A stretch of 64,000 bases of DNA from Macrostomum hystrix (GCA_950097015.1 CATNEN010000024.1:1860001-1924000); one strand, 5' to 3'; shown: positions 26,731 to 59,759, counted from the first letter of the stretch. Notes: a model not told the origin generated them from the letters alone. Translations and numbers: made by a program.

Positions 26731-27896
26731 GACTGCTGTTTGGCTGGCTGAAAACCATAAGTCAAATTTCCATGTGCACTAAAAAGTAAAAGCATGTGCT
26801 ATTTTTAATCACTAGCAACTTTAATGTTATTTGCTTAACCCTGCTAAACAAATCTTTTTTTACTGAAAGGATATAAATAACCCTAATGGAGCCAATTTAA
26901 AAAAGCTGCGGACACTCCTGCTAGGCGCGCAGGTGCACAGTTGTTTTCAAGAAAAAGAGTGCAAATCCGCAATTGCTATATATCTTCAGTCTGACTCAAT
27001 GTAGTAATTGATTTCTAAAAAATGTTGAAAGACCTTTTTTTGATTGCCGTAGTGTATTTCTATAATTAGAACAGCTAAGGTTGTCTTTTCACACTCGGGC
27101 ACTGCGGAGCATGTATATGTGTAGGGGCACAAGGGTGCACTGTTTGTTATACATCTACATACTTCCGACAACTTTACACACACAAGGCGCAGCCGCGTGG
27201 ACAGGAAATTCTTTCTGCGCATCCAATTTTTCACAAGTGCGCCGGACGCTGTCCACAAAAACCCTTATTGGCTCCAATAGGGATCAATCACCTCTATTTG
27301 CAGTATGAGTTTTATGATTAGATAAGCTTTTTAATGTACACTTACAAAAAACAAAGAACAAACAAGTAGCAAGAAATGATGAGGTTTTATACTATCTCAG
27401 CAATATCATAATTGATAATTTTTTTAAAGTTTTAGTTGGCCTAAATAACTAATAAACTAGCAAAAAAAGTTGCATTTTATCTACTTTACAACCAAAAAAT
27501 GTTCTGATAAGCTTTAACTTAAAGTAGCTAATCTACATTAAGAAAATGATCATTCTTAGCAGCTGGCTAACTAAACTAGCCTAGAAAAAAATATATAGAG
27601 CCTATAACAGTAGCTATAAAGCAAGATAGTATAAGACTATAATCTATATTTAAGGGTATGTGCAACAAGGACTTATATGTTGATTTATATATATAAAGGC
27701 CAATTTCTAACCCTATTGAAATAATTTGACAAATTGCATCCGACCATTTGTTGAATTTTCTGACTTTTTTGTGTCAGTTGAGTTGCAGAGTGTCGCAACC
27801 ACATCGCTACACAGTGTTGCATTGTTAGGTTAGGCTAAAACACTGGTTAGGATAATATTAGCATTCTATGTAGTGTCCCAGTTTCAAGCCATATTT

Positions 27897-28367
27897 ACGT
27901 CTATACTTCCAGTACCAGAACCAGTACCAGAACCAGTACCAGAAAAAAATTATGTTATAGCCAACAAAAAATCGACAAGCAACTAATAAAAAGACTTCTA
28001 ACAGATGAAATACTTATATATCGGTCCGAAAATATCATTATTGAGAATAAAATTAATAAATATCGACGGACTTGCGCACAACACACAAAGAATCGTTTAC
28101 TTTCACAAAACGTTTTCTAATATATGTTTTTCATAGAATAAAACAAATTTGCTCAACCAACTAAGTAAACGAATACAAAAAGCGGTTTACTAAATATCGC
28201 AACTACTAAAATAACAACTCAAAACTCACCTCATTAAATGTGTTTGTATAATTTATTATTTTTATAATCATCGTAAACTTCATCAAAAAAACTAAAAATA
28301 TAACCTCACTTTTGCGCTTCGCAGGATTATTACTCGTACATGATATACAGCTGAGAGCAATGATAAG
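27897..28367 (+). repeat. Left TIR, unique outer part (~470 bp) with three 12-bp subterminal repeats CCAGTACCAGAA (27909-27944)
   Basis: Reverse complement of about 43037-43506, with only a few substitutions or indels seen. Confidence 0.95.
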
Positions 28368-31300
28368 GAAGGAAACATTATCTGTGAACACGGCTGTAAA
28401 ATTTCAGAGCCCTGACTAGTCGCGTCTCGGAGTTGTAGACCCTCGAGTCCCCCCCACTCTGATATCTCCCATTTTAAAAGTACTTTTCGTCACCTCACTG
28501 AATCTGGTGGTCAGACGAGGCTGAAAACTCAGATCTGGAAGGAAACATTATCTGTGAATACGGCTGTAAAATTTCAGAGCCCTGACTAGTCGCGTCTCGA
28601 AGTTGTAGACCCTCGAGTCCCCCCCACTCTGATATCTCCCATTTTAAAAGTACTTTTCGTCACCTCACTGAATCTGGTGGTCAAAAAAAGCTGAAATCTC
28701 AGATCTGGAAGGAAACATTATCTGTGAACACGGCTGTAAAATTTCAGAGCCCTGACTAGTCGCGTCTCGGAGTTGTAGACCCTCGAGTCCCCCCCACTCT
28801 GATATCTCCCATTTTAAAAGTACTTTTCGTCACCTCACTGAATCTGGTGGTCAGACGAGGCTAAAAACTCAGATCTGGAAGGAAACATTATCTGTAAACA
28901 CGGCTGTAAAATTTCAGAGCCCTGACTAGTCGCGTCTCGGAGTTGTAGACCCTCGAGTCCCCCCCACTCTGATATCTCCCATTTTAAAAGTACTTTTCGT
29001 CACCTCACTGAATCTGGTGGTCAGACGAGGCTGAAAACTCAGATCTGGAAGGAAACATTATCTGTGAATACGGCTGTAAAATTTCAGAGCCCTGACTAGT
29101 CGCGTCTCGGAGTTGTAGACCCTCGAGTCCCCCCCACTCTGATATCTCCCATTTTAAAAGTACTTTTCGTCACCTCACTGAATCTGGTGGTCAGACGAGG
29201 CTGAAAACTCAGATCTGGAAGGAAACATTATCTGTGAATACGGCTGTAAAATTTCAGAGCCCTGACTAGTCGCGTCTCGAAGTTGTAGACCCTCGAGTCC
29301 CCCCCACTCTGATATCTCCCATTTTTAAAGTACTTTTCGTCACCTCACTGAATCTGGTGGTCAAAAAAAGCTGAAATCTCAGATCTGGAAGGAAACATTA
29401 TCTGTGAACACGGCTGTAAAATTTCAGAGCCCTGACTAGTCGCGTCTCGGAGTTGTAGACCCTCGAGTCCCCCCCACTCTGATATCTCCCATTTTAAAAG
29501 TACTTTTCGTCACCTCACTGAATCTGGTGGTCAAAAAAAGCTGAAAACTCAGATCTGAAAGGAAACATTATCTGTGAACACGGCTGTAAAATTTCAGAGC
29601 CCTGACTAGTCGCGTCTCGGAGTTGTAGACCCTCGAGTCCCCCCCACTCTGATATCTCCCATTTTAAAAGTACTTTTCGTCACCTCACTGAATCTGGTGG
29701 TCAGACGAGGCTGAAAACTCAGATCTGGAAGGAAACATTATCTGTGAACACGGCTGTAAAATTTCAGAGCCCTGACTAGTCGCGTCTCGGAGTTGTAGAC
29801 CCTCGAGTCCCCCCCACTCTGATATCTCCCATTTTAAAAGTACTTTTCGTCACCTCACTGAATCTGGTGGTCAGACGAGGCTGAAAACTCAAATCTGGAA
29901 GGAAACATTATCTGTGAACACGGCTGTAAAATTTCAGAGCCCTGACTAGTCGCGTCTCGGAGTTGTAGACCCTCGAGTCCCCCCCACTCTGATATCTCCC
30001 ATTTTAAAAGTACTTTTCGTCACCTCACTGAATCTGGTGGTCAAAAAAAGCTGAAATCTCAGATCTGGAAGGAAACATTATCTGTGAATAACGTTCTAAA
30101 ATTTCAGAGCCCTGACTAGTCGCGTCTCGAAGTTGTAGACCCTCGAGTCCCCCCCACTCTGATATCTCCCATTTTAAAAGTACTTTTCGTCACCTCACTG
30201 AATCTGGTGGTCAAAAAAAGCTGAAATCTCAGATCTGGAAGGAAACATTATCTGTGAACACGGCTGTAAAATTTCAGAGCCCTGACTAGTCGCGTCTCGG
30301 AGTTGTAGACCCTCGAGTCCCCCCCACTCTGATATCTCCCATTTTAAAAGTACTTTTCGTCACCTCACTGAATCTGGTGGTCAGACGAGGCTGAAAACTC
30401 AGATCTGGAAGGAAACATTATCTGTGAATACGGCTGTAAAATTTCAGAGCCCTGACTAGTCGCGTCTCGAAGTTGTAGACCCTCGAGTCCCCCCCACTCT
30501 GATATCTCCCATTTTAAAAGTACTTTTCGTCACCTCACTGAATCTGGTGGTCAAAAAAAGCTGAAATCTCAGATCTGGAAGGAAACATTATCTGTGAACA
30601 CGGCTGTAAAATTTCAGAGCCCTGACTAGTCGCGTCTCGGAGTTGTAGACCCTCGAGTCCCCCCCACTCTGATATCTCCCATTTTAAAAGTACTTTTCGT
30701 CACCTCACTGAATCTGGTGGTCAAAAAAAGCTGAAATCTCAGATCTGGAAGGAAACATTATCTGTGAACACGGCTGTAAAATTTCAGAGCCCTGACTAGT
30801 CGCGTCTCGGAGTTGTAGACCCTCGAGTCCCCCCCACTCTGATATCTCCCATTTTAAAAGTACTTTTCGTCACCTCACTGAATCTGGTGGTCAGACGAGG
30901 CTGAAAACTCAGATCTGGAAGGAAACATTATCTGTGAATACGGCTGTAAAATTTCAGAGCCCTGACTAGTCGCGTCTCGAAGTTGTAGACCCTCGAGTCC
31001 CCCCCACTCTGATATCTCCCATTTTAAAAGTACTTTTCGTCACCTCACTGAATCTGGTGGTCAAAAAAAGCTGAAATCTCAGATCTGGAAGGAAACATTA
31101 TCTGTGAACACGGCTGTAAAATTTCAGAGCCCTGACTAGTCGCGTCTCGGAGTTGTAGACCCTCGAGTCCCCCCCACTCTGATATCTCCCATTTTAAAAG
31201 TACTTTTCGTCACCTCACTGAATCTGGTGGTCAGACGAGGCTAAAAACTCAGATCTGGAAGGAAACATTATCTGTAAACACGGCTGTAAAATTTCAGAGC

Positions 31301-34014
31301 CCTGACTAGTCGCGTCTCGGAGTTGTAGACCCTCGAGTCCCCCCCACTCTGATATCTCCCATTTTAAAAGTACTTTTCGTCACCTCACTGAATCTGGTGG
31401 TCAGACGAGGCTAAAAACTCAGATCTGGAAGGAAACATTATCTGTAAACACGGCTGTAAAATTTCAGAGCCCTGACTAGTCGCGTCTCGGAGTTGTAGAC
31501 CCTCGAGTCCCCCCCACTCTGATATCTCCCATTTTAAAAGTACTTTTCGTCACCTCACTGAATCTGGTGGTCAGACGAGGCTGAAAACTCAGATCTGGAA
31601 GGAAACATTATCTGTGAATACGGCTGTAAAATTTCAGAGCCCTGACTAGTCGCGTCTCGAAGTTGTAGACCCTCGAGTCCCCCCCACTCTGATATCTCCC
31701 ATTTTAAAAGTACTTTTCGTCACCTCACTGAATCTGGTGGTCAAAAAAAGCTGAAATCTCAGATCTGGAAGGAAACATTATCTGTGAACACGGCTGTAAA
31801 ATTTCAGAGCCCTGACTAGTCGCGTCTCGGAGTTGTAGACCCTCGAGTCCCCCCCACTCTGATATCTCCCATTTTAAAAGTACTTTTCGTCACCTCACTG
31901 AATCTGGTGGTCAGACGAGGCTAAAAACTCAGATCTGGAAGGAAACATTATCTGTAAACACGGCTGTAAAATTTCAGAGCCCTGACTAGTCGCGTCTCGG
32001 AGTTGTAGACCCTCGAGTCCCCCCCACTCTGATATCTCCCATTTTAAAAGTACTTTTCGTCACCTCACTGAATCTGGTGGTCAGACGAGGCTGAAAACTC
32101 AGATCTGGAAGGAAACATTATCTGTGAATACGGCTGTAAAATTTCAGAGCCCTGACTAGTCGCGTCTCGGAGTTGTAGACCCTCGAGTCCCCCCCACTCT
32201 GATATCTCCCATTTTAAAAGTACTTTTCGTCACCTCACTGAATCTGGTGGTCAGACGAGGCTGAAAACTCAGATCTGGAAGGAAACATTATCTGTGAATA
32301 CGGCTGTAAAATTTCAGAGCCCTGACTAGTCGCGTCTCGAAGTTGTAGACCCTCGAGTCCCCCCCACTCTGATATCTCCCATTTTTAAAGTACTTTTCGT
32401 CACCTCACTGAATCTGGTGGTCAAAAAAAGCTGAAATCTCAGATCTGGAAGGAAACATTATCTGTGAACACGGCTGTAAAATTTCAGAGCCCTGACTAGT
32501 CGCGTCTCGGAGTTGTAGACCCTCGAGTCCCCCCCACTCTGATATCTCCCATTTTAAAAGTACTTTTCGTCACCTCACTGAATCTGGTGGTCAGACGAGG
32601 CTGAAAACTCAAATCTGGAAGGAAACATTATCTGTGAACACGGCTGTAAAATTTCAGAGCCCTGACTAGTCGCGTCTCGGAGTTGTAGACCCTCGAGTCC
32701 CCCCCACTCTGATATCTCCCATTTTAAAAGTACTTTTCGTCACCTCACTGAATCTGGTGGTCAAAAAAAGCTGAAATCTCAGATCTGGAAGGAAACATTA
32801 TCTGTGAATAACGTTCTAAAATTTCAGAGCCCTGACTAGTCGCGTCTCGAAGTTGTAGACCCTCGAGTCCCCCCCACTCTGATATCTCCCATTTTAAAAG
32901 TACTTTTCGTCACCTCACTGAATCTGGTGGTCAAAAAAAGCTGAAATCTCAGATCTGGAAGGAAACATTATCTGTGAACACGGCTGTAAAATTTCAGAGC
33001 CCTGACTAGTCGCGTCTCGGAGTTGTAGACCCTCGAGTCCCCCCCACTCTGATATCTCCCATTTTAAAAGTACTTTTCGTCACCTCACTGAATCTGGTGG
33101 TCAGACGAGGCTGAAAACTCAGATCTGGAAGGAAACATTATCTGTGAATACGGCTGTAAAATTTCAGAGCCCTGACTAGTCGCGTCTCGAAGTTGTAGAC
33201 CCTCGAGTCCCCCCCACTCTGATATCTCCCATTTTAAAAGTACTTTTCGTCACCTCACTGAATCTGGTGGTCAAAAAAAGCTGAAATCTCAGATCTGGAA
33301 GGAAACATTATCTGTGAACACGGCTGTAAAATTTCAGAGCCCTGACTAGTCGCGTCTCGGAGTTGTAGACCCTCGAGTCCCCCCCACTCTGATATCTCCC
33401 ATTTTAAAAGTACTTTTCGTCACCTCACTGAATCTGGTGGTCAGACGAGGCTGAAAACTCAAATCTGGAAGGAAACATTATCTGTGAACACGGCTGTAAA
33501 ATTTCAGAGCCCTGACTAGTCGCGTCTCGGAGTTGTAGACCCTCGAGTCCCCCCCACTCTGATATCTCCCATTTTAAAAGTACTTTTCGTCACCTCACTG
33601 AATCTGGTGGTCAAAAAAAGCTGAAATCTCAGATCTGGAAGGAAACATTATCTGTGAATAACGTTCTAAAATTTCAGAGCCCTGACTAGTCGCGTCTCGA
33701 AGTTGTAGACCCTCGAGTCCCCCCCACTCTGATATCTCCCATTTTAAAAGTACTTTTCGTCACCTCACTGAATCTGGTGGTCAAAAAAAGCTGAAATCTC
33801 AGATCTGGAAGGAAACATTATCTGTGAACACGGCTGTAAAATTTCAGAGACCTGACTAGTCGCGTCTCGGAGTTGTAGACCCTCGAGTCCCCCCCACTCT
33901 GATATCTCCCATTTTAAAAGTACTTTTCGTCACCTCACTGAATCTGGTGGTCAGACGAGGCTGAAAACTCAGATCTGGAAGGAAACATTATCTGTGAACA
34001 CGACTGTAAAATTT
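28368..34014 (+). repeat. Left-arm satellite array, 170-bp unit, 33 full copies plus a partial
   Basis: GGAAACATTA recurs every 170 nt from 28371 to 33981. Confidence 0.98.
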
Positions 34015-34496
34015 TTCAAGTTTGTGGAAGAATCTGAAAAAGGAGGTTTTGAAGGAGCTATTGTTTCTGTAGTTTTTTTTTCGTTTTTTCAGTTTGTTTC
34101 GATTTAGCCTAATATAATATAAGTTTTTCTTTTGGTATATTTTTCGTGAGCCCTCCTCTTTTTGAAACCAGGCTTGGGACTGGCTTAGGCAGAGTTTTTC
34201 ACAAAGTCTTTAATACATTTTTAGTTTTAGTTTTTTGTAAGATTTTTGTTTTTTTAAGCGTTTTGTTGGTTTTAGTGTTTTTGTTTCACACAAAAGCCAA
34301 TATTTACGAGTAGATAAGTCTTACAATATTTTGCAGCTTAGATTATTCACAGTTTTACATGCAAACCGGTGGTATAATTTTTTACAGAATTGACTTGTCC
34401 TTATTAAAAAACTACAGATTTGACATTTCATTTTTAAGCAAGTAGCTTTTAGTAATTAGTTTATTTTTTCACTGCACTCTTGGTGCATCCATCCAG

Positions 34497-36020
34497 CTAT
34501 CGCGTTGCTGCGTACTCGGCGCAGCAGCAGACGTAGCCGTTGGACGCGTGGCGCTGGTGCATATCTTTCGATGCACACTCATGGTGCAGCCATGAATCAC
34601 AAAGATCACATTGCAGCCAAGTTCCAGTCGCACTGGGTTCAGCTTCATGACAGCGAACGCACGAGTTGGTGGATTCTTCATTTTCTCTTTCCAAGTCTTT
34701 CCAGATGCAGATTCGAGCTCTGTTAAGAAATCCCTCCGTCGTTGGAAAGCACAAAGCTCGGAACTCGGTATCAACGGATGTTACTAGAACTTTCGCGTAC
34801 AGACAGACAAATACACCACAGCTATGACCATCAAACTGCAATGATCTCAACATTGATTTATTTTTATACGTACCTAAAATTTCTGGCATGTCTTCGCGAA
34901 TACTGGCGGTGCTTTGGATTAGGTTTTGCCATAGTTTTATAAAATGTTTTGGTATCGACTTATCTGAGATAGGTTTTGTGTCTAGGACAGCTAATTCTTT
35001 GCGTGTTGTGTCAATATAGACTAAGTAGAAGTGGTCGTTCTGAAGGATCGGACAGATCAAACGGGTGCATTTGTTTGAAACTGTCGCTCTTAGCATTTCA
35101 ATTGCAGCGCTCGAATCTCCTTTGCGAATGCAGCTAAAGAAGCTAGATGGTAGGTGGCCCGCTTTGCTGTTTGGGTTGCATACGCAAAGTAGATGTATGA
35201 ATGAATTTACTACTCCGACAGAAAGCCACTTTCCGGGTTCCAATGATTGTCTATCAAACTCAGTTAGGAAATCTCCAGCGCGGGTGCACCACACCTGTTC
35301 CCGTTCTGCTGTGCCTTGCTGCTTTCTATTCTTTGTCGCTGATTCTGTTCTCTGTCGCTTGTACTTTGAACGACTAACCCGCTCGGCCCTTCGCCACTCC
35401 TCGCGAGAAAAAGAAATATCTTCGTGCTTTCTCTTCCTTCCAGATAAAGTTGCTTTTCCCACTTTGTTGATTATGTCAAAGGCTGTTAATCTTGTTTTTA
35501 AATATTTTAACCGTCCGCAAATAAAACTCGACACGTTCACCCTGGAAGCCTTGCCGAACCTTGTTTTTCGAGATTTAACGTCAGAAAAGTACGATTCTAC
35601 ATAAGAGTTTGAAAACCAACTTTTATTCTTTCTGAAGCTCTTGATACTCCCGATGAAATGGCAGAACAATGGAGCTAAACTACACCAGTGCTTCAGCAAG
35701 TAAACCAGAAGTTTTGGTGAGTAATAGCTTTTAAATGGCCCGGCTGGCTCGTCGGTTGCATCAATACTTGCCTGTCGGGACTTAAAAAGAAAAATGTACG
35801 GAGAGCTTTCGCGCAGAGAAGCAAATCGAGAACTTTCGGCCTGCTCTTCCTTATTGTTATTTATTTCATCGTCGTTGTAGAGCAAATATTCTTCGTCCAC
35901 GGGCTCAGTTTCCCAATTGTTAATCGCTGATCTTAATTCTTTCGGATCTCGCTGCCCTAAAAATGTATCTACAGTCAGACTCAAGGTAGTTTCAAACGCT
36001 TCAAAAGTCTCCTGATGCAA
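34497..36020 (-). CDS. C-terminal part of the transposase polyprotein: third catalytic Glu, Ulp1/SENP (C48)-type cysteine protease and PHD finger
   Basis: FSNSYVESYFSDVK (MULE N-x2-E motif); WLSVGVVNSFIHLL, ILQNDHFYLVYID, VLDT and LQFDGHSCGVFVC (His-Asp-Gln-Cys of C48 proteases); CVRC...WLQCDLCDSWLHHEC...YVCCC (PHD-like C4HC3). Confidence 0.9.
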   Translation of the reverse strand: MHQETFEAFETTLSLTVDTFLGQRDPKELRSAINNWETEPVDEEYLLYNDDEINNNKEEQAESSRFASLRESSPYIFLFKSRQASIDATDEPAGPFKSYYSPKLLVYLLKHWCSLAPLFCHFIGSIKSFRKNKSWFSNSYVESYFSDVKSRKTRFGKASRVNVSSFICGRLKYLKTRLTAFDIINKVGKATLSGRKRKHEDISFSREEWRRAERVSRSKYKRQRTESATKNRKQQGTAEREQVWCTRAGDFLTEFDRQSLEPGKWLSVGVVNSFIHLLCVCNPNSKAGHLPSSFFSCIRKGDSSAAIEMLRATVSNKCTRLICPILQNDHFYLVYIDTTRKELAVLDTKPISDKSIPKHFIKLWQNLIQSTASIREDMPEILGTYKNKSMLRSLQFDGHSCGVFVCLYAKVLVTSVDTEFRALCFPTTEGFLNRARICIWKDLERENEESTNSCVRCHEAEPSATGTWLQCDLCDSWLHHECASKDMHQRHASNGYVCCCAEYAATR

Positions 36021-39000
36021 TAAAAAACGAATGCGCTAATAAATAATTCCCGCATAGCTTTACCTTCCGCAGTTTTAGACTTTAGTTGTATGCCATTAAT
36101 GAACGCACGGATTACGTGATTTGTGCAAATGAATGGAATCGTGTACTTGATTTGTTTCCCCATGCGTAACGCACAATGCGTATCAATAAGGTATTGCTCT
36201 AAGCTAGTGCCAAATGACTGGCATACCGAATGTAACATAGCCCAAGAGAAGTCCGTGACGATGACAGCGGGTAAATAGTCATGCGACATAATTGTACTGC
36301 TTGCTAGTGTGCCCAAATCTGCGCGGACAGAAAACAAAAAGTGTTGGATTGATTTGGTCCTATGCTCACTTGTTATCATTTCGGCCACAGGCACACCACG
36401 CGTCTGACCGTTATCGGAGGGCATTGTCAGCGAGTAAAGAAATATTTGGCTACCTGCGAAATTCATTCTCTTGAAAATGCTTCCAGTGGCATCTAGATGT
36501 AAAACACACTGCGGCCTACTTGTAACAAGTCTAAGCTGTCTTTCGAGGTACAGATGTACATGAAATGGATGGCGAGACACAGCTTGAATGTATCCGCGTA
36601 TACTCTTACTCTCTGTGTCTGTTTCGCTCAGTATTCGTTGCAAAGCAGCAATTTCGACTTCAACATTTTTATGCAGCCGTTCTTCTGCGGCCACCAACCG
36701 CTTCGCGTTTACCCGCCGAATGGCATCCAAATTTTTCGATCGAGAAAAATCATTTTCCTTTATCTCTTTATCTGTCATTTCCGAGAGTAGTCTATCATGT
36801 ACATCAGTTGGTGCTTCAGTTTCAAGTAGTTTTGCTATCCTTTCTGATTCTAATGGCGTCATTCTAGACATCGTTGGATGATTATGATTCTTCTCACCTT
36901 TAGAATTAACAACTACCTCCACAGGCTCATTTTCAGTTGGAAAATCTATAATTCTAAAATCGTGTACTATTTTGCATGCGGGATGCTGGCATAATGCGAC
37001 CTGTTTTACGAAATATTTTGGCTTTAGTGCTCTGAGATTTGGAAAGTTCACATATCGATTTTTAAATTTTAGAACACAGTTACTTGCTTCCACATTCAAA
37101 GAGCAATATTGTCGATAATTTTCACGAATGCAGTTTAGCCACCAAAGAGCGGTTCTCTGACATATCGAATGCATTTTTTCTCCCCGCCTGATAAAAAAGT
37201 TACTTTTCCACTGTCTCCAAGCTATTCGAAAATGAAAAATTAAATTAGTCATTGATTCGCTTTCACCACTCTCGAAATCAGCACCAACTTCAGCATTAGT
37301 AAAATCCCTTACTTCTGAATCATCACTCCCAGCATCATCACTCCCAGAAGCACTCATATCATCACTCCCAGCATCATCACTCACAGCATCATCTCTCCCA
37401 GCATCAACACTCCCAGCGTCATCACTCCCAGCATCAACACTCCCAGCGTCATCACTCCCAGCATCAACACTCCCAGCGTCATCACTCCCAGCTTCAACAC
37501 TCCCAGCGTCATCACTCCCAGCTTCAACACTCCCAGCGTCATCACTCCCAGCTTCAACACTCCCAGCTTCAACACTCCCAGCGTCATCACTCCCAGCATC
37601 AACACTCCCAGCGTCATCACTCCCAGCATCAACACTCCCAGCGTCATCACTCCCAGCTTCAACACTCCCAGCGTCATCACTCCCAGCTTCAACACTCCCA
37701 GCGTCATCACTCCCAGCATCAACACTCCCAGCGTCATCACTCCCGGCATCAACACTCCCAGCGTCATCACTCCCAGCATCAACACTCCCAGCGTCATCAC
37801 TCTCAGCGTCATCACTCTCAGCGTCATCACTCTCAGCGTCATCACTCCCAGCTTCAACACTCCCAGCATCATTACTCCCAGAATCACTCATATCATCACC
37901 ACCAGCATCATCACTTCCACGAGCAGGCCCCACAGAAGCAGCAACAGCACCACGGGCAGGCACAGCAGAAGCAGCAACAGCACGACGGGCAGGCACAGCA
38001 GAAGCAGCAACAGCACGACGGGCAGGCAGAACAGAAGCAGCAACAGCACGACGGGCAGGCACAGCAGAAGCAGCAACAGCACCACGGGCAGGCACAGCAG
38101 AAGCAGCAACAGCACCACGGGCAGGCACTGCAGAAGCAGCAACAGCACGACGGGCAGGCACAGCAGAAGCAGCAACAGCACCACGGGCAGGCACAGCAGA
38201 AGCAGCAACAGCACCACGGGCAGGCACAGCAGAAGCAGCAACAGCACCACGGGCAGGCACAGCAGAAGCAGCAACAGCACGACGGGCAGGCAGAACAGAA
38301 GCAGCAACAGCACGACGGGCAGGCACAGCAGAAGCAGCAACAGCACCACGGGCAGGCACTGCAGAAGCAGCAACAGCACGACGGGCAGGCACAGCAGAAG
38401 CAGCAACAGCACCACGGGCAGGCACAGCAGAAGCAGCAACAGCACCAGGGGCAGGCACAGCAGAAGCAGCAACAGCACGACGGGCAGGCACACCAGAAGC
38501 AGCAACAGCACCAGGGGCAGGCACAGCAGAAGCAGCAACAGCACGACGGGCAGGCACAGCAGAAGCAGCAACAGCACGACGGGCAGGCACAGCAGAAGCA
38601 GCAACAGCACCACGGGCATGCACAGCAGAAGCAGCAACAGCACCACGGGCAGGCACAACAGAAGCAGCAACAGCACGACGGGCAGGCACAACAGAAGCAG
38701 CAACAGCACCACGGGCAGGCACAGCAGAAGCAGCAACAGCACCACGGGCAGGCACAACAGAAGCAGCAACAGCACGACGGGCAGGCACAACAGAAGCAGC
38801 AACAGCACCTCGAGTGGATCTTACGACAGCAGATTTATGATAAGCAGTATTCTTACTTTTCGAAACAGAAGATTTTGACTTACCGAATATTTTACGCTGA
38901 TAATACAGCCAGACAACTCGACGGTTTTCAATAGTGTTCTTTGCTGAAAGCTTGCTCAGAATTTGCCCGCAAGCACCATAGGGACAGCGAAATGATTTGC

Positions 39001-39130
39001 GAAGGCACTCATCACTATAGTCTTCAAAATATTCAGGCGACAGTTCAAAAAAAGAAATGCGTCGATTGTGGGTTGCTTTGCAAATGCAGAAAATTGAAAG
39101 TAAAGCAATGATGCGAAGACTGAAAATCAT
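35981..39130 (-). CDS. N-terminal part of the MULE/NOF-type DDE transposase (Zn-finger-like DNA-binding domain, first two catalytic Asp, CxxH)
   Basis: CQHPAC...KNHNH (WRKY/GCM1-like finger); LHLDATGSIFK; FLYSL; PVAEMITSEH; IVTDFSWAML; FICTNH. Overlaps the downstream ORF by 40 nt in the -1 frame. Confidence 0.9.
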   Translation of the reverse strand: MIFSLRIIALLSIFCICKATHNRRISFFELSPEYFEDYSDECLRKSFRCPYGACGQILSKLSAKNTIENRRVVWLYYQRKIFGKSKSSVSKSKNTAYHKSAVVRSTRGAVAASVVPARRAVAASVVPARGAVAASAVPARGAVAASVVPARRAVAASVVPARGAVAASAVHARGAVAASAVPARRAVAASAVPARRAVAASAVPAPGAVAASGVPARRAVAASAVPAPGAVAASAVPARGAVAASAVPARRAVAASAVPARGAVAASAVPARRAVAASVLPARRAVAASAVPARGAVAASAVPARGAVAASAVPARGAVAASAVPARRAVAASAVPARGAVAASAVPARGAVAASAVPARRAVAASVLPARRAVAASAVPARRAVAASAVPARGAVAASVGPARGSDDAGGDDMSDSGSNDAGSVEAGSDDAESDDAESDDAESDDAGSVDAGSDDAGSVDAGSDDAGSVDAGSDDAGSVEAGSDDAGSVEAGSDDAGSVDAGSDDAGSVDAGSDDAGSVEAGSVEAGSDDAGSVEAGSDDAGSVEAGSDDAGSVDAGSDDAGSVDAGSDDAGSVDAGRDDAVSDDAGSDDMSASGSDDAGSDDSEVRDFTNAEVGADFESGESESMTNLIFHFRIAWRQWKSNFFIRRGEKMHSICQRTALWWLNCIRENYRQYCSLNVEASNCVLKFKNRYVNFPNLRALKPKYFVKQVALCQHPACKIVHDFRIIDFPTENEPVEVVVNSKGEKNHNHPTMSRMTPLESERIAKLLETEAPTDVHDRLLSEMTDKEIKENDFSRSKNLDAIRRVNAKRLVAAEERLHKNVEVEIAALQRILSETDTESKSIRGYIQAVSRHPFHVHLYLERQLRLVTSRPQCVLHLDATGSIFKRMNFAGSQIFLYSLTMPSDNGQTRGVPVAEMITSEHRTKSIQHFLFSVRADLGTLASSTIMSHDYLPAVIVTDFSWAMLHSVCQSFGTSLEQYLIDTHCALRMGKQIKYTIPFICTNHVIRAFINGIQLKSKTAEGKAMRELFISAFVFYCIRRLLKRLKLP
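37320..37910 (-). repeat. 15-bp minisatellite (reads GSDDA/GSVDA/GSVEA in the transposase frame)
   Basis: Plus-strand unit ACTCCCAGCGTCATC / ACTCCCAGCATCAAC. Confidence 0.95.
37920..38810 (-). repeat. 33-bp minisatellite, about 27 copies (reads AVAASAVPARR/G in the transposase frame)
   Basis: Plus-strand unit CACAGCAGAAGCAGCAACAGCACCACGGGCAGG. Confidence 0.95.
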
Positions 39131-39695
39131 GGTTAAAAATACGCTCGTATATTGATATACTAGCAGACGATTGAAATCAGCTTTTCTGAAGGCTTTATAC
39201 TCGAGAATTTATGCATGGCTTGTTCGGATAGGGATATGAGATAGCAAGCAAAAAGCATATAAAGCAGCTGATTGGATAGCCCAGCTACTAGTGTAAAACA
39301 GAGCACGGTACACACCCAAGTACACTTATTTTGTCAGGCATTAAATTAGCAATAAAGCATAAGGACAAAGCACTAATAACTAAATGCAATAGAGGATAAG
39401 CAATCGACACTATAAAATTCGAAGCAACATGCACACATGAGGCTTGAAATCTCAACACTCAACTTCAAACGCTAAAGCCTCAAAAGCCGACAAACATAAG
39501 AGGGCATTAGTACTTCAAAGAATAAAAAACAATAGCAAAAACCAGATCCAACATGCAAAATAAAGACCTATGTGCACGACAAGGCAAAAAATTATCCTGC
39601 ATTACCAATTGCGCAATACATCTCAACACTTCACGCAACTCAACGCTGACAATACGCAGGCATCTCAGAGTGAGGGTGTTGTATTGTGCCCACTA

Positions 39696-42600
39696 TAAAA
39701 TGGGAGATATCAGAGTGGGGGGGACTCGAGGGTCTACAACTCCGAAACGCGACTAGTTAGGGCTCTGAAATTTTACAGCCGTGTTCACAGATAATGTTTC
39801 CTTCCAGATCTGAGTTTTCAGCCTCGTCTGACCACCAGATTCAGTGAGGTGACGAAAAGTACTTTTAAAATGGGAGATATCAGAGTGGGGGGGACTCGAG
39901 GGTCTACAACTCCGAGACGCGACTAGTCAGGGCTCTGAAATTTTACAGCCGTGTTCACAGATAATGTTTCCTTCCAGATCTGAGTTTTCAGCCTCGTCTG
40001 ACCACCAGATTCAGTGAGGTGACGAAAAGTACTTTTAAAATGGGAGATATCAGAGTGGGGGGGGACTCGAGGGTCTACAACTCCGAGACGCGACTAGTCA
40101 GGTCTCTGAAATTTTACAGCCGTGTTCACAGATAATGTTTCCTTCCAGATCTGAGTTGTCAGCCTCGTCTGACCACCAGATTCAGTGAGGTGACGAAAAG
40201 TACTTTTAAAATGGGAGATATCAGAGTGGGGGGGACTCGAGGGTCTACAACTCCGAGACGCGACTAGTTAGGGCTCTGAAATTTTACAGCCGTGTTCACA
40301 GATAATGTTTCCTTCCAGATCTGAGTTTTCAGCCTCGTCTGACCACCAGATTCAGTGAGGTGACGAAAAGTACTTTTAAAATGGGAGATATCAGAGTGGG
40401 GGGGACTCGAGGGTCTACAACTCCGAGACGCGACTAGTCGGGGCTCTGAAATTTTACAGCCGTGTTCACAGATAATGTTTCCTTCCAGATCTGAGATTTC
40501 AGCTTTTTTTGACCACCAGATTCAGTGAGGTGACGAAAAGTACTTTTAAAATGGGAGATATCAGAGTGGGGGGGACTCGAGGGTCTACAACTCCGAGACG
40601 CGACTAGTCAGGGCTCTGAAATTTTACAGCCGTGTTCACAGATAATGTTTCCTTCCAGATCTGAGTTTTCAGCTTTTTTTGACCACCAGATTCAGTGAGG
40701 TGACGAAAAGTACTTTTAAAATGGGAGATATCAGAGTGGGGGGGACTCGAGGGTCTACAACTCCGAGACGCGACTAGTTAGGGCTCTGAAATTTTACAGC
40801 CGTGTTCACAGATAATGTTTCCTTCCAGATCTGAGTTTTCAGCCTCGTCTGACCACCAGATTCAGTGAGGTGACGAAAAGTACTTTTAAAATGGGAGATA
40901 TCAGAGTGGGGGGGACTCGAGGGTCTACAACTTCGAGACGCGACTAGTCAGGGCTCTGAAATTTTACAGCCGTATTCACAGATAATGTTTCCTTCCAGAT
41001 TTAAGTTTTCAGCCTCGTCTGACCACCAGATTCAGTGAGGTGACGAAAAGTACTTTTAAAATGGGAGATATCAGAGTGGGGGGGACTCGAGGGTCTACAA
41101 CTCCGAGACGCGACTAGTCAGGGCTCTGAAATTTTACAGCCGTGTTCACAGATAATGTTTCCTTCCAGATCTGAGATTTCAGCTTTTTTTGACCACCAGA
41201 TTCAGTGAGGTGACGAAAAGTACTTTTAAAATGGGAGATATCAGAGTGGGGGGGACTCGAGGGTCTACAACTCCGAGACGCGACTAGTCAGGGCTCTGAA
41301 ATTTTACAGCCGTGTTCACAGATAATGTTTCCTTCCAGATTTGAGTTTTCAGCCTCGTCTGACCACCAGATTCAGTGAGGTGACGAAAAGTACTTTTAAA
41401 ATGGGAGATATCAGAGTGGGGGGGACTCGAGGGTCTACAACTCCGAGACGCGACTAGTCAGGGCTCTGAAATTTTACAGCCGTGTTCACAGATAATGTTT
41501 CCTTCCAGATCTGAGTTTTCAGCCTCGTCTGACCACCAGATTCAGTGAGGTGACGAAAAGTACTTTTAAAATGGGAGATATCAGAGTGGGGGGGACTCGA
41601 GGGTCTACAACTCCGAGACGCGACTAGTCGGGGCTCTGAAATTTTACAGCCGTGTTCACAGATAATGTTTCCTTCCAGATCTGAGTTTTCAGCTTTTTTT
41701 GACCACCAGATTCAGTGAGGTGACGAAAAGTACTTTTAAAATGGGAGATATCAGAGTGGGGGGGACTCGAGGGTCTACAACTTCGAGACGCGACTAGTTA
41801 GGGCTCTGAAATTTTACAGCCGTGTTCACAGATAATGTTTCCTTCCAGATCTGAGTTTTCAGCCTCGTCTGACCACCAGATTCAGTGAGGTGACGAAAAG
41901 TACTTTTAAAATGGGAGATATCAGAGTGGGGGGGACTCGAGGGTCTACAACTCCGAGACGCGACTAGTCAGGTCTCTGAAATTTTACAGCCGTGTTCACA
42001 GATAATGTTTCCTTCCAGATCTGAGTTGTCAGCCTCGTCTGACCACCAGATTCAGTGAGGTGACGAAAAGTACTTTTAAAATGGGAGATATCAGAGTGGG
42101 GGGGACTCGAGGGTCTACAACTCCGAGACGCGACTAGTCAGGGCTCTGAAATTTTACAGCCGTGTTCACAGATAATGTTTCCTTCCAGATTTGAGTTTTC
42201 AGCCTCGTCTGACCACCAGATTCAGTGAGGTGACGAAAAGTACTTTTAAAATGGGAGATATCAGAGTGGGGGGGACTCGAGGGTCTACAACTCCGAGACG
42301 CGACTAGTCAGGGCTCTGAAATTTTACAGCCGTGTTCACAGATAATGTTTCCTTCCAGATCTGAGTTTTCAGCCTCGTCTGACCACCAGATTCAGTGAGG
42401 TGACGAAAAGTACTTTTAAAATGGGAGATATCAGAGTGGGGGGGACTCGAGGGTCTACAACTCCGAGACGCGACTAGTCGGGGCTCTGAAATTTTACAGC
42501 CGTGTTCACAGATAATGTTTCCTTCCAGATCTGAGTTTTCAGCTTTTTTTGACCACCAGATTCAGTGAGGTGACGAAAAGTACTTTTAAAATGGGAGATA

Positions 42601-43037
42601 TCAGAGTGGGGGGGACTCGAGGGTCTACAACTCCGAGACGCGACTAGTCAGGGCTCTGAAATTTTACAGCCGTGTTCACAGATAATGTTTCCTTCCAGAT
42701 CTGAGTTTTCAGCTTTTTTTGACCACCAGATTCAGTGAGGTGACGAAAAGTACTTTTAAAATGGGAGATATCAGAGTGGGGGGGACTCGAGGGTCTACAA
42801 CTTCGAGACGCGACTAGTCAGGGCTCTGAAATTTTACAGCCGTATTCACAGATAATGTTTCCTTCCAGATCTGAGTTTTCAGCCTCGTCTGACCACCAGA
42901 TTCAGTGAGGTGACGAAAAGTACTTTTAAAATGGGAGATATCAGAGTGGGGGGGACTCGAGGGTCTACAACTCCGAGACGCGACTAGTCAGGGCTCTGAA
43001 ATTTTACAGCCGTGTTCACAGATAATGTTTCCTTCCT
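39696..43037 (-). repeat. Right-arm satellite array, same 170-bp unit inverted, about 19.6 copies
   Basis: TAATGTTTCC recurs from 39792 to 43023 (19 x 170 + 1 nt from one extra G). Confidence 0.98.
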
Positions 43038-43506
43038 TATCATTGCTCTCAGCTGTATATCATGTACGAGTAATAATCCTGCGAAGCGCAAAAGTGAGGT
43101 TATATTTTTAGTTTTTTTGATGAAGTTTACGATGATTATAAAAATAATAAATTATACAAACACATTTAATGAGGTGAGTTTTGAGTTGTGATTTTAGTAG
43201 TTGCGATATTTAGTAAACCGCTTTTTGTATTCGTTTACTTAGTTGGTTGAGCAAATTTGTTTTATTCTATGAAAAACATATATTAGAAAACGTTTTGTGA
43301 AAGTAAACGATTTTTTGTGTGTTGTGCGCAAGTCCGTCGATATTTATTAATTTTATTCTCAATAATGATATTTTCGGACCGATATATAAGTATTTCATCT
43401 GTTAGAAGTCTTTTTATTAGTTGCTTGTCGATTTTTTGTTGGCTATAACATAATTTTTTTCTGGTACTGGTTCTGGTACTGGTTCTGGTACTGGAAGTAT
43501 AGACGT
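43037..43506 (-). repeat. Right TIR, unique outer part with three inverted 12-bp subterminal repeats
   Basis: Reverse complement of 27897-28367. Confidence 0.95.
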
Positions 43507-45394
43507 CCATATTTTTATACCCATGTTGCATGTCCACAGGTTTTTGACATTTATTCCAAAAGGGATTTCTAAAAATGAGCCATCATAAATTTTATTAGCT
43601 CTTTAAGCAATAATTCATATGATAGGCTTCCCTTTTAACCTTTTAGTAAGCCTATAGCTAGCTATAGCATAATTAATAGCCATCTTATCTTCTGTTCTAC
43701 TCTAGGGCCTATATCATTGCCATTGTAAATAAGATTTAAGAAATGCTTTAGGGTTAGTATAGAGCTACACAAAAACAATGAGCTTTCCTTTGCAAAGCAA
43801 TCACATTAGGCCTAGAATTCTATTTGCTAAAGAAATAGAGCAGATATACTGACAATAGCTAGGCCCTAGTATAGCAGCCAGCTTAGGTTAGCTAGGGCCT
43901 AGCTAGCTACATAGGTCCAATTCATGTAGCCTGTAGCTGACTAGCTGTAGTTGTAGCTAGAAAAGTTGATTTCTAGAGTTCACTTCATAATCACTTTAAT
44001 CAATTGACAATTGGTCACGACAGAATGCCGCATCTTCAAGAACCAAGTAGTGCCTCATATTAAGGGATACATTTTTGCCAATAGGCCTAGGCTAACTGCC
44101 GTTTTAATTTGTCCTTGTGCTAGGTTTAGTACAAAGATTAGGCCTACCCTATTTAATTATTATTTGTACTAGTGAATTGGATCATTGGAGACATGAATCA
44201 AATTCATTGCCAATTGAAATACATTAAGCCTACAGAGATGGCGATCACCATGTACAGGTGATTATCTCTGAAACTACTAGTCCAATTTGGTAGGAATTTG
44301 ACACGGTATCATATCTCGGCTGCTGTATGGAGAATATAAAGTTTCGACACTCCGAGTTTGTTTAATTTTATAGAGTTTTTGATTCATCGAATATCAATCT
44401 GAATATCCATGGGGAAACATTATATTTTACAATACGAAGCCTTATAAATAAAAAAGAACATGTTCTCGGAACAAAGAACATGTTCGGAGTTGCCTATTAG
44501 GCGACCGTCGCGCATGTTCGATGTAGCCTAAAGTCGTTAATACTGATCTTCAGGCAAGTCCGGATATTTTTGTGAAATGTTTTGACTCTGCGCTAAAATT
44601 ATCACAGCGATTGCCTACCTTGATTAAAAGATGCGGATTAATTTTTCGTCTCAACAAAAAAATGCTTTTCTGCGAAAGCTAGATTTAAAATTCCGTGCTT
44701 AACCGGGACTATTCTTCGTTAAACTGTTAGATTCTTTTTTCCCTTTTTACTTTTAACAGCCTTAGTTGAAGCTAAGCACGTGAGTCCCAAACGTTGGATA
44801 AGGTCACAGATGAGAAGCTATAGCATGTGTTTCTGAACAGGCAATCAATTACCCCGCTCCCAATCCTGCATTGTCAAGTGAAATATTTTCAAACAATTTT
44901 TTTGCCCTAAATTTCTTAGAAATTCAAACAATGTTATTCATTGTTACCCATTGGACACATTTTCAAAAAATAAGTATTGTCTATAGGAACCGCTCTGGTT
45001 TTCTGACAAATTTTTTTAAACCGACAACAAAGAACATACACACAAGCCGACTGGGATATCTTTTGTGACACCTGGGCGAAAAATCCTAAAAGTACTCTGT
45101 ATTCAGCTTGCATTCCAATGTGTTTTTTCCTAGAAATATCACTTTATTTCTAAAAATCGTGACTTTTCACAGAGGGTCAAAACATTTTTTTCATTTATGC
45201 TAACGTCTGAGTAATATCAATAATAATAATAATAACTATTGTGCAAGAACTTTTTTCTTCTTAATGAATGATTCCGCATTGGTGTGTTTCACAACCCCAT
45301 TTCCAGGCATCCAAGTATAAATTGTACTTTGTTAACTCAACTTGACTTACTTATCGTCATTTTGATGCCTTTACTACAAAAATATTTGAACCCT

Positions 45395-45655
45395 CAGGTG
45401 CTTCACAACCAACTCTCATGTGCTACAAGACCTTAACTCTCAGGTGTTTCAAAACCCCAATTCTCAGGTGTTTCAAAACCCCAATTCTCAGGTGTTTCAC
45501 AACCCCCAATTCTCTGGTGTTTCACAACCCCAGTTCTCAGGTGTTTCACAACCCCAGTTCTCAGGTGTTTCACAACCCCAGTTCTCAGGTGTTTCAAAAC
45601 CCCAATTCTCAGGTGTTTCAAAACCCCAATTCTCATGGTGTTTCACAACCCCAAC
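45395..45655. repeat. 24-bp minisatellite GGTGTTTCACAACCCCAGTTCTCA
   Basis: About 10 copies visible; gives the VFHNPSSQ-type pseudo-ORFs. Confidence 0.9.
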
Positions 45656-45799
45656 TCTTGATGAATCTTAAGATATTTCTCAATACAGTTTGGTTAGTGG
45701 CAGCCGCAGGGCCTTGGCCAGCAGTAATAAAGGTTGTCCAAGCGTTACACGCCGCGGGCATGCTGCAGGAGTAAAACGTCGCGCGCTCCCGCTTTTAAT

Positions 45800-46824: not shown

Positions 46825-47095
46825 CTGAGCTGACTCAGTAGGAGTGACAGGGTCTCCCGCTGACTCAGTGGGAGTGACAGGGTCTCCCGCTGACTCAGTG
46901 TAAGTGTCAGGGTCTCCCGCTGACTCAGTGGGAGTGACAGGGTCTCCCGCTGACTCCGTGTGTCAGGGTCTCCCGCTGACTCAGTGTAAGTGTCAGGGTC
47001 TCCCGCTGACTCAGTGGGAGTGACAGGGTCTCCCGCTGACTCAGTGTGAGTGTCAGGGTCTCCCGCTGACTCAGTGTGAGTGTCAGGGTCTCCCA
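46825..47095. repeat. 30-bp minisatellite CTGACTCAGTGGGAGTGACAGGGTCTCCCG, about 9 copies
   Basis: Direct inspection. Confidence 0.92.
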
Positions 47096-57791: not shown

Positions 57792-58115
57792 TTACAGAGG
57801 TTGCAGCCTAGTGGTTAGGGCGTCGGACTCACGACTTGAAGGTCGGGGGTTCGATTCCCGACTCCCCTGAACAATTTGTGTCCTTTAGCAAGACACTTAA
57901 CTCTGCATTGCTTCAGTTCACCCATCTGTTAAATCGGTACCAGCATCAGCTGGGATAATTGAAGGTGGGTGTGGCGTCCCCCCAGTCCGTGGACTGAACA
58001 GCTGTACGCAGCCTTCAGATGCGCCGCGCATTAGCTGCGGCTGTGCTGTCGGCTGCACATCTGACCCAATTGGGGCAGGTGTAATAAATTATTATTATTA
58101 TTTATTATTAATTAA
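57792..58115 (+). mobile_element. tRNA-derived SINE with a CORE(MIR)-like central domain and (ATT)n tail
   Basis: A-box GCAGCCTAGTGG and B-box GGTTCGATTCC; central GTGTCCTTTAGCAAGACACTTAACTC...CAGTTCACCCATCTGTTAAAT resembles the CORE-SINE consensus; AT-rich tail; flanking direct repeat AGAGTGATCAGTA (57779-57791 and 58116-58128). Confidence 0.85.
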
Positions 58116-58825
58116 AGAGTGATCAGTAGGAAAGAGTGATCCGTAGGAGAGTGATCAGTAGGAAAGAGTGATCCGTAGGAGAGTGATCAGTAGGAAAGAG
58201 TGATCAGTAGGAAAGAGTGATAAGTAGGAAAGAGTGATCCGTAGGAGAGTGACCAGTAGGAAAGAGTGATCCGTAGGAGAGTGATCAGTAGAAAAGAGTG
58301 ACCAGTAGGAAAGAGTGATCCGTAGGAGAGTGATCAGTAGGAAAGAGTGATCCGTAGGAAAGAGTGATCAGTAGGAAAGAGTGACCAGTAGGAGAGTGAT
58401 CAGTAGAAAAGAGTGATCAGTAGAAAAGAGTGATCAGTAGGAAAGAGTGATCAGTAGGAAAGAGTGATCCGTAGGAGAGTGATCAGTAGAAAAGAGTGAT
58501 CAGTAGAAAAGAGTGATCAGTAGGAAAGAGTGATCAGTAGGAAAGAGTGATCCGTAGGAGAGTGATCAGTAGGAAAGAGTGATCAGTAGGAAAGAGTGAT
58601 CAGTAGGAAAGAGTGATCAGTAGGAAAGAGTGATCAGTAGGAAAGAGTGACCAGTAGGAGAGTGATCAGTAGGAAAGAGTGATCAGTAGGAGAGTGATCA
58701 GTAGGAAAGAGTGATCAGTAGGAAAGAGTGATCAGTAGGAAAGAGTGATCAGTAGAAAAGAGTGATCAGTAGGAAAGAGTGATCAGTAGGAGAGTGATCA
58801 GTAGGAACGAGTGATCAGTAGGAGA
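58116..58825. repeat. 16-17-bp minisatellite AGAGTGATCAGTAGGA(A), about 40 copies; three degenerate copies also at 57737-57791
   Basis: Direct inspection. Confidence 0.95.
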
Positions 58826-59759
58826 CTGATTGCGAGGCAATCATCAGATTATTTTTTTATTGGAAATCCAGCAGACTTTAGCTACTAGCATTCTCTATTC
58901 GGATCGATAGTTTCGTTATCTACTTATGATACTACTTACGGCAGTATTAAGAGCAGCAAAAGAAGCAATATTGAAAAATAAATGCTACTTAAGTGCAGAA
59001 TTTGTAGAAAAGCAGCGATAAATAATTGAAATGCAACGTGCCTGACTTGACGAACCCTATAAAAATGCTCAGATAATCGAATTCGAGGCAGCTGACTTAA
59101 AAACTGGCTTCCAATTTGTGAGTGAGTAAGGATAGCGCATCCACTGCGCGGCTCAGAAAATACTTCGTTGGTGCCACAGCCCTGGAAGTGGACACCGCCG
59201 GGCTGGCGCTGTCCCTGAAGTCCCCAGGTGGTCATATTTCCAGGACTTCAATTGGGTATAAAAGTCGATGCGCAGTCGGAAAGAAACTAATGATCAGACC
59301 AACGAGCAGACGATATTGACCAAAGAGCGAGCTTGAAAGTGTTGTTCTTGTGTTAGCAGCTCCCCAGCAAATTCTGACTCACTCCTGAGTGTCTCAAGTG
59401 CTCTTTAGACTACTCTCTTTAGAATAGCAAGTGCTGCTAAAGAACTCGCGCCAGATATCTGAGTCAGCCTGTCATGCAGGACCACAGCGGTAAGCAGGCG
59501 CTTCACTTTCGGATCTAATGACGATTGGGCCAAACATGAAGGTTAAGGGCATTGTTGCTATGAATCGTAATAATCATCTGAATGGGATTTGGAATCCCAT
59601 TCCCTTTTTGTAGCTTGTAGCTACCGAGACTCCACATGGAGGCTTTGGGTTCCACAAGTTCCTTTTGGGATATTCGGAATATTGTTGTCTAGAAATATCT
59701 TTAATTTTCGGGGCACAGACTTTCTTTGAGAAAACGAAGTTACTTTGGCACGTAAAAGT

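Follow-up and report, generated by a model that had tools for sequence, protein, structure and literature searches.

Animal cut-and-paste transposases that end in a protease domain of the Ulp1 type have been described in hydra, where Ginger1 transposases carry Ulp1 or 'Ulp1, PHD' tails (Ginger1-9_HM) and are drawn in the same figure as Mutator transposases (PMC2836005; Bao, Kapitonov and Jurka 2010). Rehavkus, another described group, has as its hallmarks a PHD finger, a minisatellite and long terminal inverted repeats (TIRs) with subterminal tandem repeats (PMC6446971; bioRxiv 10.1101/2024.12.02.626372), and in Tribolium the Rehavkus ends are filled with satellite DNA, where an end may hold as many as 50 monomers and satellites of 80 kb have arisen by expansion (bioRxiv 10.1101/2024.12.02.626372). 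Satellite-filled foldback ends also occur in Tetris of Drosophila (PMC4079207), and the accepted role of repeats in foldback ends is that of extra transposase-binding sites giving a higher transposition efficiency (PMC4079207; bioRxiv 10.1101/2024.12.02.626372); they are further regarded as seeds of satellite DNA (PMC5225508, PMC4079207). Here, an element of this known design is described from Macrostomum hystrix, in a window of 64,000 nucleotides (the whole stretch of DNA that was analysed, CATNEN010000024.1:1860001-1924000), where a foldback transposon encloses a single gene for a transposase that ends in an Ulp1/SENP-type cysteine protease domain (C48) followed by a PHD finger, together called the C48-PHD cassette below.

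The element is a recently inserted, single-gene foldback-type DNA transposon of the Mutator superfamily, probably in its NOF/Rehavkus-like branch (Table 1). Each of its ends opens with a unique part of 470 bp, and these two parts differ at 2 of the 468 positions compared (27899-28366 against its partner, 99.6% identity). Further inwards follow tandem arrays whose unit is exactly 170 bp, with an identity to the consensus of 97.8% in the left array and 98.6% in the right one. These arrays (5.6 and 3.3 kb) jointly make up 57% of the element and, as in other foldback elements, they are its terminal inverted repeats, of which they form the greater part. The gene lies between them, separated from the array by 482 bp on one side and by 565 bp on the other, and no second copy of the gene or of the 170-mer was found elsewhere within the window. 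It encodes one protein, in which an N-terminal motif, a disordered linker, a WRKY/FLYWCH-like zinc finger, a DDE core with a C(2)H motif, the C48 domain and the PHD finger follow one another; all of the motifs that a first-pass annotation of this DNA had named (the zinc finger, the D, D, CxxH and E of the core, the His-Asp-Gln-Cys set of C48 and a PHD-like finger) are present on the minus strand, in one reading direction.

Table 1. Features of the foldback element and its gene, in window coordinates (TSD, target-site duplication; ORF, open reading frame; NLS, nuclear localisation signal)
Feature	Coordinates	Strand	Remarks
Left TSD, 8 bp	27889-27896		CCATATTT; the same octamer directly flanks both element ends
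Whole foldback transposon, 15,610 bp	27897-43506		termini ACGTCTATAC.../...GTATAGACGT; arms 97-98% complementary
Left unique subterminal TIR part	27897-28366	+	3 copies of the 12-bp repeat CCAGTACCAGAA (27909-27944)
Left 170-bp tandem array	28367-34014	+	33.2 copies (Tandem Repeats Finder, TRF)
ORF2, 507 aa	34497-36020	-	transposase end (E of DDE; VESYF within 35574-35612), basic NLS-like linker, C48, PHD, stop codon
C-terminal PHD finger	34521-34661	-	C-x2-C ... C-x2-C-x4-H-x2-C ... CCC
Ulp1/SENP-type C48 cysteine protease domain	34686-35273	-	His330, Asp347, Gln395, Cys401 of ORF2; WL..VN 35187-35231; His in NDHFY 35013-35039; Asp in AVLDTKP 34971-34991; Gln and Cys in LQFDGHSCG 34803-34841
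ORF1, 1049 aa	35981-39130	-	N-terminal family motif, repeat linker, zinc finger, D, D, C(2)H
Frame break at T6 run	36021-36034	-	one base fewer than the dominant contigs of runs X1, X2 and X3 after 36021
DDE core, first part	36113-36502	-	D880 (LDATGS, 36479-36502), D960 (TDFSW, 36227-36259), C1002-x2-H1005 (CTNH, 36113-36133); from the family alignment
WRKY/FLYWCH-like zinc-finger domain, putative DNA-binding	36878-37081	-	CVLKF strand, then C-x4-C-x29-H-x-H; CQHPAC 36974-36991, HNH 36878-36886
In-frame minisatellites	37319-38809	-	15 bp x41 (DAGSD/DAGSV) and 33 bp x27 (AVAASAVPARG); low-complexity linker
Right 170-bp tandem array	39696-43036	-	19.6 copies; inverted relative to the left array
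Right unique subterminal TIR part	43037-43506	-	3 copies of the 12-bp repeat (43459-43494)
Right TSD	43507-43514		CCATATTT; directly flanks the right element end

Because Pfam alone was unconvincing for the present copy, each part of the protein was tested independently. A word-based search with the transposase core returned 19 relatives (the best at 29% identity, E 1e-26), and the blocks that define the family (CVLKF...SRK...C-x4-C...H, GYIQ..PF, LDATGS, PVAEMIS, DFSWA.IHS, HLC.AH and NA.VENWF..VK) are all kept in the window copy, where the block with the catalytic E extends across the frame break into ORF2. When the family core was compared by hhalign with five proteins that pass PF10551, the two were matched over 137 columns with a probability of 94.9% (E 4.8e-8), and both catalytic D residues and the C(2)H motif were aligned. 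A protein-language-model search gave Mutator-like elements (MULE) as all ten of its ten best Pfam-bearing matches (Atlas). When the N-terminal 412 residues of the core were modelled with AlphaFold (pLDDT 79.7), the best structural cluster in the Atlas was the one named '120.7 kDa protein in NOF-FB transposable element' (TM by query 0.59), of whose members 45% carry Peptidase_C48 and 34% PHD; the next clusters are FLYWCH+MULE, FAR1+MULE and SWIM, and those with FLYWCH and FAR1 align over model residues 1-412 at a TM of 0.48-0.54. The zinc-finger region has no Pfam match, and a four-stranded sheet is predicted for it in the AlphaFold model. Among solved structures in the PDB, Foldseek returned for the transposase model only weak RNase-H-like matches, the best being the P element transposase (E 3e-3), and no Mutator transposase.

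On sequence comparison and predicted structure, then, the transposase belongs to the Mutator superfamily, and the assignment made in the first-pass annotation holds. Long TIRs and a TSD of 8-11 bp mark this superfamily, and the element has both, in its long arms and its 8-bp duplication. Zisupton elements have been described with an 8-bp TSD and an Ulp1 tail, and an element of the Zisupton/KDZ type would likewise display the 8-bp TSD and the C-terminal Ulp1 domain that are seen in the window. However, both D residues and the C(2)H motif of the core find their counterparts in MULE-domain proteins, all of the named feature and structure neighbours are MULE, FLYWCH, FAR1 or NOF, and an 8-bp TSD is within the Mutator range (PMC5225508), which makes a Zisupton origin scarcely credible. 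The narrower placement of this Mutator element with NOF/Rehavkus is probable, and it comes from the architecture of the element and from an automatically named structural cluster. Within the NOF-like family, other members have OTU, UCH or an N-terminal PHD instead of the tail described here, so that a ubiquitin-like-modifier protease and/or a histone reader on the transposase is a recurring theme.

The two domains of the tail are recognised by predicted fold (C48) and by profile (PHD). An AlphaFold model of the window cassette (pLDDT 83, pTM 0.76) has as its best PDB matches in Foldseek SENP3, SENP5, SENP2, SENP1 and Ulp1 (E 2e-11 to 3e-9), and these rank above DEN1/NEDP1, which is a NEDD8 protease, and above bacterial CE-clan enzymes such as XopD; a profile of the finger only matches the solved PHD fingers of KAT6A, DPF3, ALFIN-like, KMT2D, BPTF, KDM5B, PHF2 and TAF3 (E 1e-13 to 1e-8). 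A word-based homologue search with ORF2 returned nothing in the allowed length range. An exhaustive HMMER search with ORF2 gave 144 matches, many of them spanning its residues about 250-500 as a single block. Across an alignment of 26 sequences at ~20% identity, the QxDxxxCG motif has an invariant Gln, Cys and Gly, the first six PHD ligands, which are canonical in the window copy, are invariant as well, and the catalytic His is nearly so.

The cassette ends canonical MULE proteins (PF10551, PF21056, FAR1) such as Branchiostoma floridae XP_035667341 (P0030), which aligns end to end with the cassette of the window, and Antedon mediterranea XP_071952734; it also ends NOF-like proteins of the window's own family (P0022) and is found on long proteins whose N-terminal family is not recognised by Pfam (P0032, P0097 and P0124). 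The C48-PHD tail is, in other words, an ancient and conserved accessory module on several transposase types and is not peculiar to the window element. Three proteins of ~1,450-1,610 aa (P0073, P0078 and P0089), in which Pfam finds a YqaJ-type nuclease and an internal PHD, align with the window C48-PHD over their C-terminal ~230-250 residues, where Pfam itself finds neither C48 nor a C-terminal PHD; the alignment suggests that YqaJ-type proteins with the same tail would represent a third kind of mobile element.

The pairing of C48 with PHD is not new, since Ulp1 with PHD was published in 2010, PHD is listed for Rehavkus, and the NOF cluster already displays the pair; the added PHD, which the first-pass annotation had taken to be potentially novel, was thus already on record for hydra Ginger1 and Mutator transposases (PMC2836005) and recurs within the cassette on the MULE proteins of lancelet and crinoid. 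In hydra Ginger1 as well as in hydra and lancelet Mutator, the same order of a C-terminal Ulp1 and then a PHD is found on a cut-and-paste transposase (PMC2836005), but the cores differ, that of Ginger1 being integrase-like and those of the lancelet and crinoid proteins being canonical MULE with FAR1/SWIM-type parts. Ginger1 TIRs are also short, at 44-270 bp (PMC2836005), unlike those of the window element. Closer in overall design are Rehavkus, as Repbase names this side of the superfamily, and NOF-FB of Drosophila, which share with the present element long inverted ends occupied by tandem repeats, one large gene for a transposase that has a PHD, an internal minisatellite and a MULE-related DDE core, and from which it departs in the very large size of its arrays and in its minisatellites, which are part of the reading frame in the 5' half of the gene instead of preceding the 3' TIR.

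Two further comparisons concern the repeats and the protease separately. Muta1 of Aedes aegypti, Tetris and Galileo share with the window element a terminal motif and subterminal tandem repeats in their TIRs, and Muta1 also has a TSD of 8-9 bp (PMC5225508, PMC4079207); however, the repeats of Muta1 are of 12 bp only, its 504-aa transposase has neither protease nor PHD, and Galileo is an element of the P superfamily. In plants, an Ulp1 domain (KIU) is found in some of the VANC anti-silencing genes of VANDAL Mutator elements, and these genes act on motif-bearing related elements (PMC13317346, review), and KAONASHI/KIU together with VANC provide a case in which a Mutator-superfamily element with an Ulp1-like domain is linked to sequence-specific anti-silencing that acts on non-coding motifs of the element itself (PMC13317346, PMC5735166, PMC10398659). 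The plant case differs in that its Ulp1 domain is on a separate gene of the VANC type and not fused to the transposase, that it has no PHD, and that the mark removed is DNA methylation. In the present DNA a VANC homologue was not noticed, although no search was aimed at one.

ORF1 and ORF2, both on the minus strand, overlap, and a single frame break between 36034 and 35981, at a T6 run, separates them. To check the frame, contigs from four public runs were aligned to 34400-37300, and in the dominant contig of three of them (X1, X2 and X3; two organism labels, depth 528 in X1) one additional base is present after 36021, with which the frame of ORF1 runs on into ORF2. Since the dominant contigs of three runs carry this base, the break is either peculiar to the present copy or a homopolymer error of the assembly. 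Programmed -1 frameshifting at the T-run was considered and is unlikely, because the heptamer U UUU UUA is in phase with the downstream and not with the upstream frame and the run contigs carry one more base. Self-processing of a polyprotein by the protease was considered as well, and no Gly-Gly site or ubiquitin-like domain is found between transposase and protease. X1 and X2, although differently labelled as to organism, carry nearly the same gene over 34400-37300, with 38 and 47 differences from the window copy in ~2.7 kb, most of them shared, and therefore at least two closely related taxa or strains harbour the family.

The full-length protein probably has some 1,540 aa and not about 985 aa. 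The first-pass annotation had given the lower figure for a repaired reading frame, and while the need for repair at one break stands, a start at 39130 with the minisatellites read in frame favours the longer product. Residues 47-80 of ORF1 (38891-38992) align with the N-terminal motif of the relatives, S.WG...N....R..Y..W, and the minisatellites sit exactly in frame between this motif and the zinc finger, at a position where the relatives have acidic low-complexity stretches. Differences between the units are mostly non-synonymous (26, as against 4 synonymous), and the linker can thus be described as frame-preserving, sequence-unconstrained and disordered-looking.

Selection on the gene was estimated from one comparison, that of the window copy with the dominant contig of run X1, which differ by 38 substitutions in 2.7 kb (1.4%). 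All 37 coding changes taken together comprise 25 synonymous and 12 non-synonymous ones, which corresponds to a ratio of non-synonymous to synonymous change per site (pN/pS) of about 0.13 (binomial P below 1e-6), and since selection between lineages has thus been purifying for the gene as a whole, the family is active or was so until recently. Residues 1-240 of ORF2, the C-terminal part of the transposase, have 11 synonymous and 2 non-synonymous changes (pN/pS 0.05), and the whole transposase including its ORF1 part has 18 and 5. In the PHD finger a single synonymous and no non-synonymous change is found (pN/pS 0), while the C48 domain has 6 synonymous and 7 non-synonymous changes, with a pN/pS of about 0.33 (P 0.05-0.13); the catalytic residues are untouched by any non-synonymous change. 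From these small numbers of aligned differences, the protease looks less constrained than the transposase, yet not neutral, so that the neutral evolution which the first-pass annotation had named as a possible refutation is not what is seen, as far as one comparison and 13 substitutions can tell.

Taken as a whole, the account of a foldback Mutator gene of the NOF/Rehavkus-like type, with a conserved C48-PHD cassette, is in our judgement probable, if by no great measure, and several observations weigh against it. In the present copy, Pfam scores both cassette domains below threshold, with 15.6 bits for C48 (PF02902; cut-off 20.7) and 15.3 bits for PHD (cut-off 24; E 0.021), and on whole ORFs and sub-pieces it finds no transposase family, PF10551 included. 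Relatives that share the cassette pass PF02902, with up to 65.7 bits. In the protease, Phe stands after the catalytic His in place of the usual Trp, and in the finger the last ligand pair is CCC (ACC in P0021, the closest relative), which is atypical by comparison with C-x2-C. The ranking of predicted folds favours SENPs, and the choice among SUMO, NEDD8 and ubiquitin as the presumed substrate is drawn from fold and family, as is the histone H3 tail as the putative ligand of the PHD. To these may be added that the constraint on C48 rests on 13 substitutions only, that no evidence of transcription was found, a lone 232-nt contig, from a run whose RNA origin is a guess, proving nothing, and that the TSD of Rehavkus is listed as 9 bp as opposed to 8 bp here. 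The last point weighs little, since TSDs of either length, 8 or 9 bp, are produced by active MULEs, Muta1 among them (PMC5225508).

The sub-threshold Pfam scores, together with the 7 non-synonymous changes among the 13 in C48, are what would be expected if protease and PHD were a captured host fragment that has no present function. This reading is very unlikely, given that across phyla and at ~20% identity the Gln, Cys and Gly and the six zinc ligands do not vary and the His scarcely does, that the cassette recurs on several transposase types, and that pN/pS is about 0.33 for C48 and 0 for the PHD.

A role of SUMO in heterochromatin formation on animal transposons is well established, and because a SUMO-type protease is here physically coupled to a histone reader, chromatin-bound substrates are suggested. 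The mechanism that we prefer, if at rather less than even odds, is a chromatin-tethered deSUMOylase that would keep the chromatin of the element permissive. In this mechanism, the zinc finger would bind repeats in the ends of the element, the PHD would dock on the histone H3 tails of neighbouring nucleosomes, and the protease would strip SUMO, or a modifier akin to it, from chromatin proteins in the vicinity of the bound transposase, whereby the element would stay open to expression and excision. Such anti-silencing would be compatible with the deep conservation of the cassette, with a protease that, on weak statistics, does not evolve neutrally and, in a very small sample, with the arrays beside its C48-bearing relatives, as discussed below.

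Alternatively, the cassette may serve the mechanics of transposition, with the PHD steering integration to chromatin such as H3K4me3 near genes and the protease removing SUMO from the transposase or from repair factors. The PHD of the cassette keeps Trp at two positions, which we take to be those of the methyl-lysine cage in readers of H3K4me3, for example BPTF and TAF3, and its PDB matches include readers of this mark. A role in transposition and DNA repair has been proposed for the Ulp1 and OTU domains of transposases (PMC2836005), and Muta1 reinserts mostly in gene-rich regions (PMC5225508). However, the evidence that bears on such a role is all indirect, and some members of the family have an N-terminal PHD and no protease, from which it follows that PHD and protease can act apart; we regard this role as possible but doubtful.

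With regard to the tethered deSUMOylase, the question arises whether the arrays themselves are involved, and for this purpose eight loci were compared, which were chosen by availability and are phylogenetically non-independent. Tandem arrays, with units of 69-186 bp, are found at all five loci that bear C48 (three as inverted pairs) and at none of the three that do not (Fisher P about 0.02). The former are the window element (NOF-like with C48 and PHD, inverted pair of 170-bp arrays), a MULE with C48 and PHD from Antedon (L004; inverted arrays of 69 bp x9 and x10), a NOF-like element with C48 from a barnacle (L008; about 21 kb, inverted arrays of 71 bp x29 and x40), a NOF-like element with C48 and PHD (L001; 186 bp x15, on a single side) and a C-terminal transposase part with C48 and PHD whose family is not identified by Pfam (L005; 175 bp, at the contig end). 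The latter are a NOF-like element with an N-terminal PHD only, in which no arrays were found (L002), one with OTU that has plain TIRs of about 890 bp and no arrays (L006), and one with no accessory domain and no arrays in its ends (L007). A metagenome scan made to enlarge this sample yielded 10 loci, but none of their contigs exceeds 6.9 kb, which makes them uninformative. The co-occurrence of ubiquitin-like-protease tails and tandem arrays in foldback Mutator elements is a lead for a comparative test.

Two of these loci are worth describing in their own right. In Amphibalanus amphitrite (JAHNUP010001072.1, L008:453-21255), a foldback-looking element of ~21 kb has inverted 71-bp arrays (~29 and 40+11 copies) around a NOF-like transposase with C48, and in Antedon mediterranea (OZ206125.1, L004:4287-17510) a MULE gene with introns and a C48-PHD tail lies between inverted 69-bp arrays of 9-10 copies each, inside long inverted repeats. 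With respect to unit length, four loci have units near the nucleosome repeat length, of unrelated sequence: the window (170 bp), L001 (186 bp, 14208-17143), L005 (175 bp, 6103-6594) and L016 (169 bp, 2159-3278), the last of which adjoins fragments of a NOF-like transposase, as opposed to the units of 69-71 bp in L004 and L008.

The first-pass annotation had proposed that the 170-bp arrays are a landing pad on which the element concentrates its own deSUMOylase and histone reader and so undoes SUMO-dependent silencing, as an animal analogue of VANDAL/VANC. For this proposal speak the conserved and non-neutral cassette, the action of plant VANC genes with Ulp1 (KIU) on motif-bearing related elements (PMC13317346), the distribution of arrays over C48-bearing and C48-less loci, small as that sample is, and the near-nucleosomal spacing of 169-186 bp in four NOF-like loci. 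Against it, the 170-mer shares with the terminal 12-mers or the unique end nothing above 8-mers at chance level, the array units of different elements have no sequence in common, and Ginger1-9_HM has Ulp1 and PHD yet a TIR of only 120 bp (PMC2836005). Arrays are also found in foldback elements with no known cassette, where transposase-binding sites are the simpler and accepted role (PMC4079207), the association comes from a tiny sample that was neither random nor phylogenetically independent, and the metagenome scan added no usable locus to it. A landing pad of this kind is therefore unlikely. In its most specific form, nucleosome-length arrays of C48-PHD foldback elements would be multivalent transposase platforms that concentrate a histone-tethered deSUMOylase and block SUMO-dependent heterochromatin; this we consider equally improbable, although, if it were true, the co-occurrence of arrays with C48 at five of five as against none of three loci would be its genomic footprint.

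As it stands, the locus represents a known transposon design in good preservation, and its main use lies in the annotation of the repeats of the genome and of its 170-bp satellite. Beyond this, a SUMO-type protease linked to a chromatin reader rides on several unrelated families of animal transposases, and to our knowledge the cassette is still without a known function, sixteen years after it was first noted. Young and nearly intact copies under purifying selection exist in this family, which makes the question directly testable. If the cassette did remove SUMO-dependent silencing from its own element, it would be the first anti-silencing enzyme encoded by a transposon in animals, and the growth of satellite arrays would be linked to an arms race with host silencing.

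Outside the element, the window holds other minisatellites that are unrelated to the 170-mer, with units of 27 bp x21 (25003-25570), 24 bp x11 (45393-45658) and 30 bp x9 (46829-47094). Local GC skew is strong in 2-kb windows of the sequence, with -0.45 at 4001-6000 and +0.29 at 58001-60000.

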